From: Ascoidea asiatica JCM 7603
Lineage: Eukaryota; Fungi; Ascomycota
Direction of reading: 5' to 3'
Assembly (NCBI GenBank): GCA_001600695.1
Contig: BCKQ01000002.1
Location: 2,165,857-2,229,856, forward strand
DNA: 64,000 bases
Part shown: positions 11,685 through 15,597 of the stretch, in pieces
Layout of the letters: each line of letters opens with the position of its first letter
How positions within the stretch are numbered: the stretch's first letter is position 1
Position numbers and translations under genes: made by a program
Notes under the pieces: generated by a model
Database searches by the model: none
What the model was told of the DNA's origin: nothing
What the model saw: the letters and a program-made list of their open reading frames with translations, nothing else

Positions 11685-12179
11685 TATTGATTATTGATTA
11701 TTGATTATTGATTATTATTATAGATTGAATTCTAGTTATTTGAAATAGGAGAAACTAATAAAAACCAGATTGAAATAATATTAGAAAATATATTAGTTAT
11801 TTTTTGTTACTCTCAAGACAAACGAATGTCTTTTAAGAGATTGCTGTTACTAGAATATGATTATGATTAAGCAATGAAGAAGAATAATCAATAAGGAAAA
11901 GAAAACAATCGATCAAATATCAATAAGTGTATTTTGATTATAAGAACTACTTTCTATAATAATATCTTTACTATTTGATATAATTTGAGTGTTTATATCT
12001 CTTGATTTGTATCTTGATTTGTATCTTGATTTGTATCTTTTTGATTTGCACAACGATAAATGATCAATGAAGAAGTGATGAGAGAATGCAAGAGTGAATA
12101 TAAACAGGAGAAGATAGCGCTGTGGGCAGATTCAGAAAGAGCGTTGCAGGGAGTTGGAGCTGGAGCTGGCGCTGATAGC

Positions 12180-12236
12180 GATAAGAGAAGGAGAGAGCGG
12201 ATAAGGAATGTTCCGAGGCAGGATATCACAGATAAG
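12180..12236 (+). promoter_or_regulatory. Cluster of three GATAAG motifs upstream of ATG2 (GATA-factor/nitrogen-starvation UAS candidate)
   Basis: GATAAG at 12180-12185, 12200-12205 and 12231-12236 in a GC-richer patch ~500 bp upstream of ATG2. Confidence 0.5.
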
Positions 12237-12695
12237 CTTAGAAAGTAAACCTGAGTAGAAAAATTATGGATTGGCATGGAATTGTGGATTGCGAGCATTG
12301 CTGCTAAAATCTGGCGCCATTTATCCGGGTCTTCTTGGAATTGTTAAACGAGACCACAAAAAGGGCAATTTTTCCTGATTTTGATAATTGTAAACACTGA
12401 ATATTTTATTTTCTTTTGCATTTGTTTACAATAACGATAATTGTAGTTACATTTGAGTTCCCAAAGAAATTATATATTAAATATAAAAGATGTTTAAGAA
12501 TATATAAGTAAGTATATATAAAGAAAAGAGATATTGAAAAATATGGAAGGTTTTTAGAAAAAAGAGAAAAAGTTAGACGTTTTTTTTATGATTTTAATAA
12601 TATATTAATTTTTTTTTTTTTTTTTTAAGGGAAGGAGTTTTTTTTTGATATATTTATGTATCAATAAATGTATTTATACATATATTTGAATATGT

Positions 12696-13931
12696 TTAAC
12701 AAATACCCTCAGGAAATTCTTCATCAACTCTTGGATTACTTTCAACTCTTAAAAGCATTCTACCATGAATTGAAGTATGATGAGGTTTATTGAAAAGTTT
12801 ATAATGTGATCTTTTTCTAACATCACGAAATTTGTTTTTCATTTTTTTCATAATTTTTTTAATTAATTTAATAAGCGTCTTGAAAGTATAACCATCAAGG
12901 CTACTCTTTTTTCTGCAATATGAAACTTTGAAACCAACAGAATGTGATAATGAAGAAGCATCAACTAAATCAGAATCATTATCATTATTTTCATCTCTTT
13001 TAAGAATTGAAGAAAATTTTTCAACTTCACTTTCTTTCATTGAAAATTTATCACCTTTTTTAATTTTATTTTGTTTTTTATTGAAATATCCATAAATTGC
13101 ACTTGTTTCTGGTGTACGAGCTCTAATAATACATTGACTACCTTCTTCAAATAATCCAAATTCTAATTCAATATTTCCCATAAAAATAGAAAATTCCCAT
13201 TTTTTAACTTTTGATTTTTTACCATCTTGAATTTCAATTGAATTAGTTCTTATTTCTTTTGTTGAAATAATACTATTATCTGATCCATATCCAATAATAT
13301 CTGAAGAACTAAGTTTATAATTATCTTCACCTAATCTTAAAAATCTATTATAAACAAGTTCATTAACAAATTCAAAATCACCAAATTTGAGTTTTTTCTT
13401 TTTTTCAATATCAATATCAGAATCATCAAGAGTAGTAATATTTGAATTAAGTTCATTTATAAGAATATCAGTTGAAGAAATAGTAATACCTATAGTTAAA
13501 AGTAAAGAAGCAGTAACAAATAATGAACTTGCAGCAGTTAAAGCAGTTCCCATACTTGTTGCACCACATTGAAATGCTTTTCCTGGTACAATTACCCATC
13601 CTGGATTTGGACCAGTTGTAGAATGAACAAAAGCTTTACTACAACCATCAACCATACCTGCAATATTTATTGCAAGACCACCATAATTTCCCAAAGCTGT
13701 ACCCATTTCTCCAGCAATTACTGCTGCTCCAGCTGGTGAAATTCCATTTTCAATAATTTCATCTAAATCAAGGTCAGAATTAGTATCAGTATCAGTATTT
13801 GTTGAATTAGAGTTAGTTGAATTAAAAGATGAGTTTAAAGTAGGATAATCAGATGGTAATGAAATTGGTAATGATTGAACAGTTAAAAGAACTGTAAGTT
13901 GAGTGATGAAATTCTTAAATGATAATTGCAT
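12696..13931 (-). CDS. Secreted K1-killer-toxin-like preprotoxin (chromosomal KKT-type homologue)
   Basis: Signal peptide; Gly/Ala-rich hydrophobic alpha-like region with C97/C122; gamma-like FSIFMGNIELEFGLFEEG...TP; KR at 311-312; beta-like GFKVSYC...HYKLF...EFPEGIC versus K1 GIKASYC...YYKLY...DFEGC (K1 recalled from memory). Confidence 0.75.
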   Translation of the reverse strand: MQLSFKNFITQLTVLLTVQSLPISLPSDYPTLNSSFNSTNSNSTNTDTDTNSDLDLDEIIENGISPAGAAVIAGEMGTALGNYGGLAINIAGMVDGCSKAFVHSTTGPNPGWVIVPGKAFQCGATSMGTALTAASSLFVTASLLLTIGITISSTDILINELNSNITTLDDSDIDIEKKKKLKFGDFEFVNELVYNRFLRLGEDNYKLSSSDIIGYGSDNSIISTKEIRTNSIEIQDGKKSKVKKWEFSIFMGNIELEFGLFEEGSQCIIRARTPETSAIYGYFNKKQNKIKKGDKFSMKESEVEKFSSILKRDENNDNDSDLVDASSLSHSVGFKVSYCRKKSSLDGYTFKTLIKLIKKIMKKMKNKFRDVRKRSHYKLFNKPHHTSIHGRMLLRVESNPRVDEEFPEGIC

Positions 13932-14910
13932 TTTGAAATAAAATTTAATATTATTATTATATTATTATTATATTATTATTAGATTATTTTTATTATATGA
14001 TTATTATTATTATATGATTAAGTTATATTAATATTAAATGATGAATAGTAAAGTAGAAAAAAAAAAAGAATAATTATAAATTTTCATTGAAAGGAATTAA
14101 TCCTCTACTTATATATTGATTTATGTATTTTAAATCATATTGATAAGTTGATTATATGTTGAATATTATATTTGATGATAATCATTTACATACTTAAGCT
14201 TCTTTCAAAATTATACTATTTTAAAAATATAACAAGGTAATGTATAGCAATTGAAATATTTTATTTTGTTTTTATCACATATTCCACCGATTTTGTTTCA
14301 TATTGCATATATTTTATATTATACTAAATTAGATCTTTTCTATTTTATATTGTATTATTTGTATTACATGTATTCTATTTTATAATATTCATTATCTCTT
14401 GTTTGCTTATTTATTACGCTTTATCATCTCAAGTCTCAAATTGCATTTTGAATTAAAGGGTCCTCACCTTGAGTACCACAACCACGGTTTTAATTTTTTT
14501 AAAAAAGATTGCATTCACGTGTCTGCTTTCTGGTTCCCAAAGAGGCAACTTTAAATATCTTTATTTTCCTTCACCTCTTTGGCTTGTTTACTATTTATGC
14601 TTCGGTTGTTTACTGTTGACTATTGACTATTTTCATTATTTCACTAACTCAGTTCAACTTGAATCAAGTCAAATCAATTCAAGTCAAATCAATAAGAACT
14701 AAAACTGGAACAAAAAGTGAAACTAAAACCAAAGAAATTTCATCAAGTCTCATGGCTTTAATTGATAAACGAAAAGAAAACAACTCTGATTTTGTCTCGA
14801 GTGAAAATTTTGAATTGAACAGTTTGTTATTAAACAAATTTTAACTGATAATTATAAAAGTATTTCAAAACTAGTGTATAAATACAATTTAATTTACAAC
14901 TACTTTAAAA

Positions 14911-15597
14911 ATGATTCAGATTCCAATTGATTTATCTCCAAAACAAATTCAAAATAGAAAAAAAAGATCATCAAAACATTTAATAAAATCTCCATCGAGG
15001 GATTTTTTAAAAATATTTTCTAAAATGAATTCAAAATCGTTAAAAACTTCTTCCATTGACAATAATGATAATGAAGATGAGTCGAGTGATAAATCATTAC
15101 ATGATTCATCAAATGATTCAATAAGTAATCTAATCAATGAAGGAATCGATGAAATAATTGAGATAATAAATTCTTTTCAAAATTTGATTAAATCATCTTT
15201 TATTAAAAAAATAAATCAAAATTTTATAATTTTTTTATTCATTTATTTAAGTTTATTTTTTTTAACATATTTTATAATATTTAAAAGTTTAAAAATTTTA
15301 ATCTTAGCATCTTTATCAATTTTAACATTTAATTATTTATTAAATAATAATAAGAATAGTAATAGCAATAGTAATAGAAATAGAAATAAAAATAAAAATA
15401 AAAGAAAAAAAATTATATCATTTTTAATATTTTTAATATTTTTGATTTTATTGATTTATTCAATTTATAACTACAATATCAGTGATAATTATGATAATAA
15501 TAGTATTAGTAAAAAATTTGGTTTAAGATATAAATATAAATATAAAAATTGGTCTTTAATTAAAATTAATAATTCTTTAATTAATTTTGATTTTTAA
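14911..15597 (+). CDS. Hypothetical membrane protein (2-3 TM segments), divergent from the toxin-like gene
   Basis: 228-aa ATG ORF with AAAAATG context; hydrophobic stretches FIIFLFIYLSLFFLTYFIIF, ILILASLSILTF, IISFLIFLIFLILLIYSIY; no family recognised. Confidence 0.5.
   Translation: MIQIPIDLSPKQIQNRKKRSSKHLIKSPSRDFLKIFSKMNSKSLKTSSIDNNDNEDESSDKSLHDSSNDSISNLINEGIDEIIEIINSFQNLIKSSFIKKINQNFIIFLFIYLSLFFLTYFIIFKSLKILILASLSILTFNYLLNNNKNSNSNSNRNRNKNKNKRKKIISFLIFLIFLILLIYSIYNYNISDNYDNNSISKKFGLRYKYKYKNWSLIKINNSLINFDF

Follow-up and report, generated by a model that had tools for sequence, protein, structure and literature searches.

Antifungal proteins that form pores, and the movement of genes between dsRNA satellites and chromosomes, are both studied with K1-type killer toxins as models, and to our knowledge all known killer toxin families of this type came to light through their similarity in sequence to toxins of Saccharomyces. 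Here we examine a toxin-like open reading frame (ORF) of 411 codons in a 64,000-nucleotide stretch of the genome of the ascomycete yeast Ascoidea asiatica JCM 7603 (GCA_001600695.1, contig BCKQ01000002.1, positions 2,165,857 to 2,229,856; hereafter the window), which an earlier reading of the DNA (the original prediction) had taken for a divergent, intact, single-copy gene of the K1 family. We consider that this gene may well be the intact member of a small, fast-evolving, and lineage-restricted family of preprotoxins which resemble the K1 superfamily in architecture whilst being orphans in sequence. Membership of the sequence-defined family of K1 and the chromosomal KKT genes is unsupported.

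The closest described systems belong to a structural ‘K1 superfamily’ made up of the K1, K2, K45, and K74 families, with sequence identities of 7.7–32% between families (PMC13211469). In the signature of this superfamily, basic cleavage sites divide the protein into delta, alpha, gamma, and beta, in that order. The C-terminal half of alpha contains a central hydrophobic helix, which is buried and whose N-terminal end is held by a conserved disulfide to the end of the preceding element. The β-strands lie mostly between this helix and another one in beta, and the protein closes with a strand-helix-two-strand motif and a disulfide-pinned C-terminal tail. No interchain bond is found in K2, K45, and K74 (PMC13211469), whilst an interchain disulfide between alpha and beta (C92-C239 in K1) is predicted in nine of 13 homologues. 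K1 itself is a preprotoxin of 316 residues encoded by the ScV-M1 double-stranded RNA (dsRNA) satellite, and shares only 18% identity with K1L, the two being linked only by PSI-BLAST. Chromosomal K1-like toxins, encoded by the KKT genes, occur in Kazachstania, Naumovozyma, Tetrapisispora, Torulaspora, and Pichia (PMC7888664).

Preprotoxin-like layout and nearest Atlas clusters

A frame of 411 codons is expected to remain open by chance with a probability of ~2e-17 at the composition of the window (24% guanine plus cytosine, GC), and contigs from two DNA data sets (2016 and 2023) span the ORF with no differences. The ORF contains no CTG codons, so that its reading is independent of the yeast CUG code. 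The features listed in the original prediction were all confirmed, with the ORF intact, a hydrophobic leader at the N-terminus, a Gly/Ala-rich hydrophobic region, a KR pair at residues 311–312 (positions 12996–13001), and cysteines at residues 97, 122, 339, and 411; a fifth cysteine lies at residue 267.

The layout of the predicted protein (Table 1) matches the superfamily signature feature by feature, tentatively so for the β-strands, which is one of the grounds for the reading favoured here. A putative signal peptide, conserved in all three copies of the gene found in the genome and with a likely cleavage point, precedes segments in the delta/alpha/gamma/beta order, the delta-like spacer carrying three N-x-S/T sequons (N33, N37, and N42). 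In the alpha-like domain, weakly hydrophobic Gly/Ala-rich helices (residues ~63–96) are followed by C97, a 24-residue loop, C122-Gly, and a strongly hydrophobic helix of about 35 residues (~123–159, with a Kyte-Doolittle maximum of 2.28), such that the preceding helix ends at C97 and the central one begins at C122, with both cysteines kept in all three copies. This corresponds to the central hydrophobic helix of the superfamily with a cysteine pair at its N-terminal end, the disulfide between the two presumably being formed. The 20 residues after the helix are acidic, with a net charge of about -7, and a sequon at N164 is kept in copy 2 along with all five cysteines, which fits a luminal or extracellular C-terminal part.

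Of the beta element of the superfamily, the C339/C411 pair is present, C339 being kept in three of the three copies and C411, the last residue of the protein, in two, whilst the accompanying strands and helix are predicted only with a low pLDDT (predicted local distance difference test). The beta-like domain further contains a Lys-rich, strongly amphipathic helix (residues ~345–375) with a hydrophobic moment of up to 2.1. KR311-312 is the sole canonical Kex2-type site kept in all three copies, with only KKKK or KK present at the alpha/gamma boundary among them. The genome also encodes a Kex2-like convertase, which favours a preprotoxin.

The main positive evidence that the window protein and K1 are of one kind comes from the ESM Atlas (7.7 million clusters), where the nearest clusters of the window protein are unnamed Ascomycota clusters of 378 (‘Contig An04c0130’), 313, and 272 residues, with scores of 0.90 (191/256 features), 0.85, and 0.84 respectively, and 178–191 shared features. 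With K1 as the query, exactly the same three clusters were returned, at 0.88 each, although the two queries differ strongly in composition. The best structural match of the Atlas model of K1 is likewise the 378-residue cluster, with a template modelling (TM) score of 0.46 over 197 residues. This coincidence of the three nearest clusters is a second ground for the favoured reading.

Comparison with the individual families shows which of their features are shared. The domain boundaries of K45 (28–56, 57–179, 180–267, and 268–370), as described in PMC13211469, lie close to those of the window protein (Table 1). Compared by description, the K45 and K74 families (KTF/KTS) and the window protein have in common that alpha contains a central helix of the transmembrane type and beta only a single helix, with four structural cysteines predicted to form one intradomain bond in alpha and one in beta, and no interchain bond. 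However, the K45 and K74 families have tens to hundreds of homologues across the Ascomycota, compared with none detectable for the family described here. The K2 family (K2/K21/KHS, and KTT) shares the preprotoxin layout, a hydrophobic alpha, and the lack of an interchain disulfide, but possesses DUF5341 (PF17276) spanning gamma and beta, no match to which was found in the window protein (E ≤ 10) or genome-wide (E ≤ 1). A pattern for the M2 satellite of K2 found no match in IMG/VR.

K1 and the window protein share a signal peptide and a pro-region, two hydrophobic segments, a cysteine pair bracketing the loop that joins these segments, a ‘C-G’ opening the second helix, and a KR before a C-terminal domain that itself contains a cysteine pair, with one member near or at the C-terminus. 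Counterparts of K1 C95/C107 and C248/C312 are present, whereas the interchain C92-C239 pair has none; the alpha-like part has no third cysteine, and the beta-like part has no cysteine upstream of C339. In contrast to K1, the window protein possesses an acidic spacer of 42 residues that offers no basic cleavage site, and its middle part is longer (132 residues, compared with 84 in K1) and devoid of sequons. Its beta domain has a positive net charge (-9 in K1; Table 1), and its gene is chromosomal with its own promoter.

The secretion, processing, disulfide formation, and toxicity considered here are put forward as proposals. The signal peptide would direct entry into the endoplasmic reticulum, where the acidic spacer would be N-glycosylated, with C97-C122 stapling the loop before the central hydrophobic helix and C339-C411 pinning the C-terminal tail. 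Before processing, β-strands from the middle and C-terminal parts would keep the hydrophobic helix buried. Cleavage after KR311-312 by a Kex2-type convertase, cleavage at KKKK (residues 177–180) being uncertain, would then separate an alpha(-gamma) piece from a beta piece of cationic character. The absence of a counterpart of the K1 interchain pair suggests that these pieces would associate non-covalently, as proposed for K2, K45, and K74, and the released central hydrophobic helix may attack the membranes of competing fungi.

Paralogues, duplicated unit, and selection

Contrary to the original prediction, more than one copy of the gene exists. When the 20.3-Mb assembly was searched in six frames, three copies were revealed, of which that in the window is the only intact one. 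Copy 2 (G000:C2:791617-792918), which is 58–61% identical to the window copy at the protein level, is interrupted by a single TGA, which follows codon 37 shortly past the signal peptide, and is otherwise open. Copy 3 (G000:C1:1557523-1558845) is a decayed pseudogene with eight in-frame stops after the start codon, an apparent frameshifted stretch, and loss of the terminal cysteine. When further copies were sought in the genome with separate domain queries, only the same three were found.

The ratio of non-synonymous to synonymous substitution rates (dN/dS) between copies 1 and 2 is 0.53 (95% confidence interval 0.40–0.72), with a dS of ~0.5, and is significantly below 1, showing that the window gene is under purifying selection. 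The most conserved core of the family lies at residues ~241–290 in the gamma-like part, with a dN/dS of 0.31. One intact gene accompanied by pseudogenes, together with a dN/dS of 0.53, resembles the dynamics of the KKT genes, and is a further ground for the favoured reading. Both families are chromosomal, of few copies, and accompanied by pseudogenes, with paralogues of both under purifying selection (dN/dS of 0.23–0.72 among the KKTs), and in both the KR of the gamma/beta boundary is followed by acidic residues. The two differ in that the KKTs are reached by PSI-BLAST from K1L whereas the family described here is reached by no search, in that the KKTs lie mostly less than ~20 kb from chromosome ends or beside tRNAs whilst the three copies described here are internal, and in length, most KKTs being ~310–340 residues long compared with 411 for the window protein.

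The duplicated unit is ~1.8–1.9 kb long and comprises the ORF, ~340 nucleotides upstream, and, as delimited by blastn, up to ~190 nucleotides downstream, with weaker similarity beyond. The upstream region carries a conserved TATATAAG at positions 14108–14115, 177 nucleotides before the ATG, a putative promoter element shared by all three copies. Downstream, a run of 18 A residues (A18) lies at positions 12609–12626, ~70 nucleotides past the stop codon, with A-rich runs at the same place in both paralogues. The homology between copies continues past these runs, and the A18 run is probably a terminator or poly(A)-signal context rather than the tail of a retro-copy.

All three units are internal, lying between housekeeping genes and hundreds of kb from the ends of their contigs (2.50 Mb for C2 and 2.71 Mb for C1). 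No tRNA was found within the 7–8 kb read on each side of copies 2 and 3, and the nearest in the window is 26 kb away. Copy 2 adjoins an NAD-synthetase-like gene and copy 3 a phosphoglycerate-mutase-like gene, identities which we presume from their N-terminal sequences.

The original prediction had further held that the gene was either captured from, or ancestral to, the viral toxin, for which we find no support. A viral or retro-copy origin was considered and gained no support, with no terminal repeats found flanking the window unit, no flanking tRNAs, and homology between the copies that spans the promoter and passes the A-run. No GAAAAA occurs within 200 nucleotides of the ATG, and no relics of a totivirus coat protein or RNA-dependent RNA polymerase were found in the assembly, in a search whose families matched no control genome and which had no positive control. 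Nothing speaks in favour of the gene having been acquired recently from a satellite.

A further secreted orphan is encoded elsewhere in the genome. This single-copy protein of 421 residues (G000:C2:1168122-1169384, minus strand) possesses a signal peptide and LLKR at residues 87–90, followed by a hydrophobic segment, C112, a loop, C128-Gly, and a hydrophobic helix, with its ‘CGLSTLGTAL’ resembling ‘CGATSMGTAL’ of the window protein. Comparison with the profile of the three-copy family using hhalign picks out exactly the cysteine hairpin, at a non-significant E of 0.07, and the protein may be related, more distantly, to the alpha-like domain.

Tests for kinship with K1 and competing explanations

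Weighing against the favoured reading are the direct comparisons with K1, the database searches, the quality of the structural models, and certain features of the gene itself. As the K1 reference we used the M1 satellite recovered from IMG/VR with a degenerate pattern, in which ORF L008:14-961 encodes the 316-residue K1 preprotoxin; the K1 strings which the original prediction had quoted are all found in it, at residues 196, 242, 281, and 308. K1 as a query retrieves K1 variants only. BLASTP of the window protein against K1 is not significant (E of 0.3–0.48 in a single comparison), comparison of the family profile with K1 by hhalign gives a probability of 1%, and shuffle tests against K1 give z < 1.3 for the full-length protein, alpha, and gamma. 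Domain hidden Markov models (HMMs) built from the three copies, run against K1 and 6000 decoys, yielded nothing significant.

Neither the gamma nor the beta alignment of the original prediction was confirmed. That of gamma, with six identities over 30 residues, is pure chance, as 861 equally good ungapped 30-mer pairs exist compared with ~899 when K1 is shuffled. The beta motifs are indeed colinear, with the second high-scoring segment pair of BLASTP reproducing the beta-domain alignment, but at an E of only 0.48. A shuffle test of the beta domain alone, a choice made post hoc, gave a z of 3.2 (p ~0.011), but this signal is gone with the HMMs of the three copies. G-x-K-x-S-Y-C is exact in copy 2 and retained at four of five matching positions in copy 3, whereas ‘YKL’ is not kept in the paralogues.

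Database searches were similarly without result. A Pfam search with the protein gave only sub-threshold noise, searches of PDB sequences with the protein and the family profile gave noise only, and a word-indexed search of 5.8 billion proteins with the protein and the profile of the copies returned nothing at E ≤ 10. No match was found by exhaustive phmmer of 1.84 billion representative proteins, and no relative by scanning the JGI metagenomes and IMG/VR viral contigs with the family profile. The attribution to the K1 family is accordingly not borne out, and, as far as could be tested, there is no significant profile or structural match to that family; what survives of the K1-type toxin idea is the preprotoxin layout matching the superfamily signature, not kinship with K1 in sequence.

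The structural models are of low confidence, with a mean pLDDT from AlphaFold of 40 for the full-length protein and 35 for residues 61–411 with the paralogue alignment. Only the helix-hairpin-helix around C97/C122 reached a pLDDT of 60–77, within an alpha-like part modelled as a helix, a hairpin, and a long helix. Between residues 213 and 282, five to seven β-strands are predicted with low confidence (pLDDT < 50), and a helix at residues 350–381 appears in both runs, also at pLDDT < 50, without the C-terminal strands. A Foldseek search of the full-length model (pLDDT 40) against BFVD returned noise and no killer toxin. For K1 and several KKTs, too, the models in the literature reach pLDDT values of only ~37–56. 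In the Atlas, the recognition value of the window protein (1838) falls below the 2300 mark, and the three clusters in common with K1 may act as hubs to which unrecognised fungal proteins are drawn. To these points are added the single conserved canonical KR site, with KK alone at the alpha/gamma boundary, and the lack of RNA runs for this organism in the run index.

Several explanations compete with the favoured one. The window protein could truly belong, after very strong divergence, to the K1 family as defined by sequence (K1/K1L/KKT), in line with the colinear beta motifs (GxKxSYC, Y-x-L-F/Y, and F-x-x-G-x-C at the C-terminus, the first two aligned by BLASTP), the beta-domain shuffle result (p ~0.01), the counterparts of K1 C95/C107 and C248/C312, and the Atlas neighbours in common with K1. 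A miss in pairwise comparison is moreover not decisive, given that K1 and K1L are themselves connected only by PSI-BLAST. We nevertheless regard membership as highly improbable, with the full-length, alpha, and gamma comparisons at chance, hhalign at 1%, and the exhaustive phmmer search null, and with a protein that lacks a counterpart of the interchain C92-C239 pair and exceeds most KKTs in length. All three copies, in addition, are internal among housekeeping genes rather than subtelomeric or tRNA-adjacent. Equally doubtful is the explanation that the gene is what remains, through decay or domestication, of an earlier family of toxins, retained for example for self-protection only and heading for loss like the other two copies. 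Two of the three copies are already broken, the dN/dS of 0.53 is relaxed, and the alpha part and part of gamma of the K1 precursor confer immunity, the gamma-like core being the most constrained part here. Yet the window copy is open over 411 codons, the promoter element has been conserved in each of the three copies, dN/dS lies significantly below 1, and no cognate active toxin is known in the genome.

A non-toxin explanation, in which the protein is a lineage-specific membrane protein of the secretory pathway with a single-pass or hairpin anchor and a Lys-rich tail, and its likeness to killer toxins is coincidental, deserves more weight than these, though we consider it rather unlikely. The 35-residue segment, with a hydropathy of 2.28, is like an ordinary transmembrane helix, KKKK and many further lysines follow it, and the signal peptide is weakly hydrophobic; furthermore, conservation of KR is limited to one site, the searches yielded no homologue of any kind, and nothing so far points to expression or activity. 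Against this, the acidic 20 residues after the helix (net about -7) run counter to what the positive-inside rule predicts of a tail in the cytosol, Cys267, Cys339, Cys411, and the N164 sequon are kept in copy 2, and the Atlas neighbours are the same as those of K1.

Returning to the preprotoxin reading, we put forward more tentatively that this is a new sequence family of the K1 superfamily, possibly pore-forming, that occupies internal loci among the housekeeping genes of a yeast with very AT-rich DNA, has no interchain disulfide, and possesses a cationic amphipathic beta helix. If so, it would extend the fold past the families reachable by PSI-BLAST, and would argue that such toxins are old chromosomal genes sampled by dsRNA satellites, and not the reverse. 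The same architecture without detectable similarity would show that the catalogue of killer toxins is incomplete, and would provide a naturally ‘unlinked’ alpha/beta variant for probing the conserved cysteine pairs and the central helix. If the protein is not a toxin, it would be an instructive case of a preprotoxin-like layout arising easily in secreted orphans.

The locus and its neighbours

Table 1. Features of the toxin-like gene and its duplicated unit, with positions in the window and residues of the predicted protein
Feature	Positions	Strand	Residues	Remarks
Upstream region duplicated with the ORF in all three copies	13932..14273	-		contains conserved TATATAAG
Toxin-like ORF, including stop codon	12696..13931	-		411 amino acids, ATG-to-stop, intact
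Putative signal peptide	13872..13931	-	1–20	K6, hydrophobic core, V-Q-S before likely cleavage; from hydropathy and alignment
Delta-like spacer	13746..13871	-	21–62	acidic, net charge -8, no Lys/Arg
Alpha-like domain	13392..13745	-	63–180	ends in KKKK at 177–180
Gamma-like middle	12996..13391	-	181–312	holds C267, ends in KR311-312
Beta-like domain	12699..12995	-	313–411	net charge +8, GFKVSYC motif (C339)
Downstream region homologous among copies	12506..12695	-		includes A18 run

The original prediction had placed the gene next to ATG2, and the adjoining ORF of 2152 codons does match Pfam ATG2_CAD with 1039 bits. Further neighbours in the window are VOA1-, TAF11-, and ETF-QO-like genes. A lookup of the exact 411-residue protein in public assemblies returned no record.

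Divergent from the toxin-like gene lies a single-copy orphan ORF of 228 codons with multiple hydrophobic segments (positions 14911–15597, plus strand), for which a TRP-channel match in Pfam is weak and sub-threshold. A toxin and immunity cassette formed with this membrane ORF was considered and is ruled out, the ORF being single-copy and not co-duplicated. Within the intergenic region between ATG2 and the toxin-like gene, positions 12000–12499 reach a GC content of 36%, compared with ~20% around them, and contain short ORFs on both strands.

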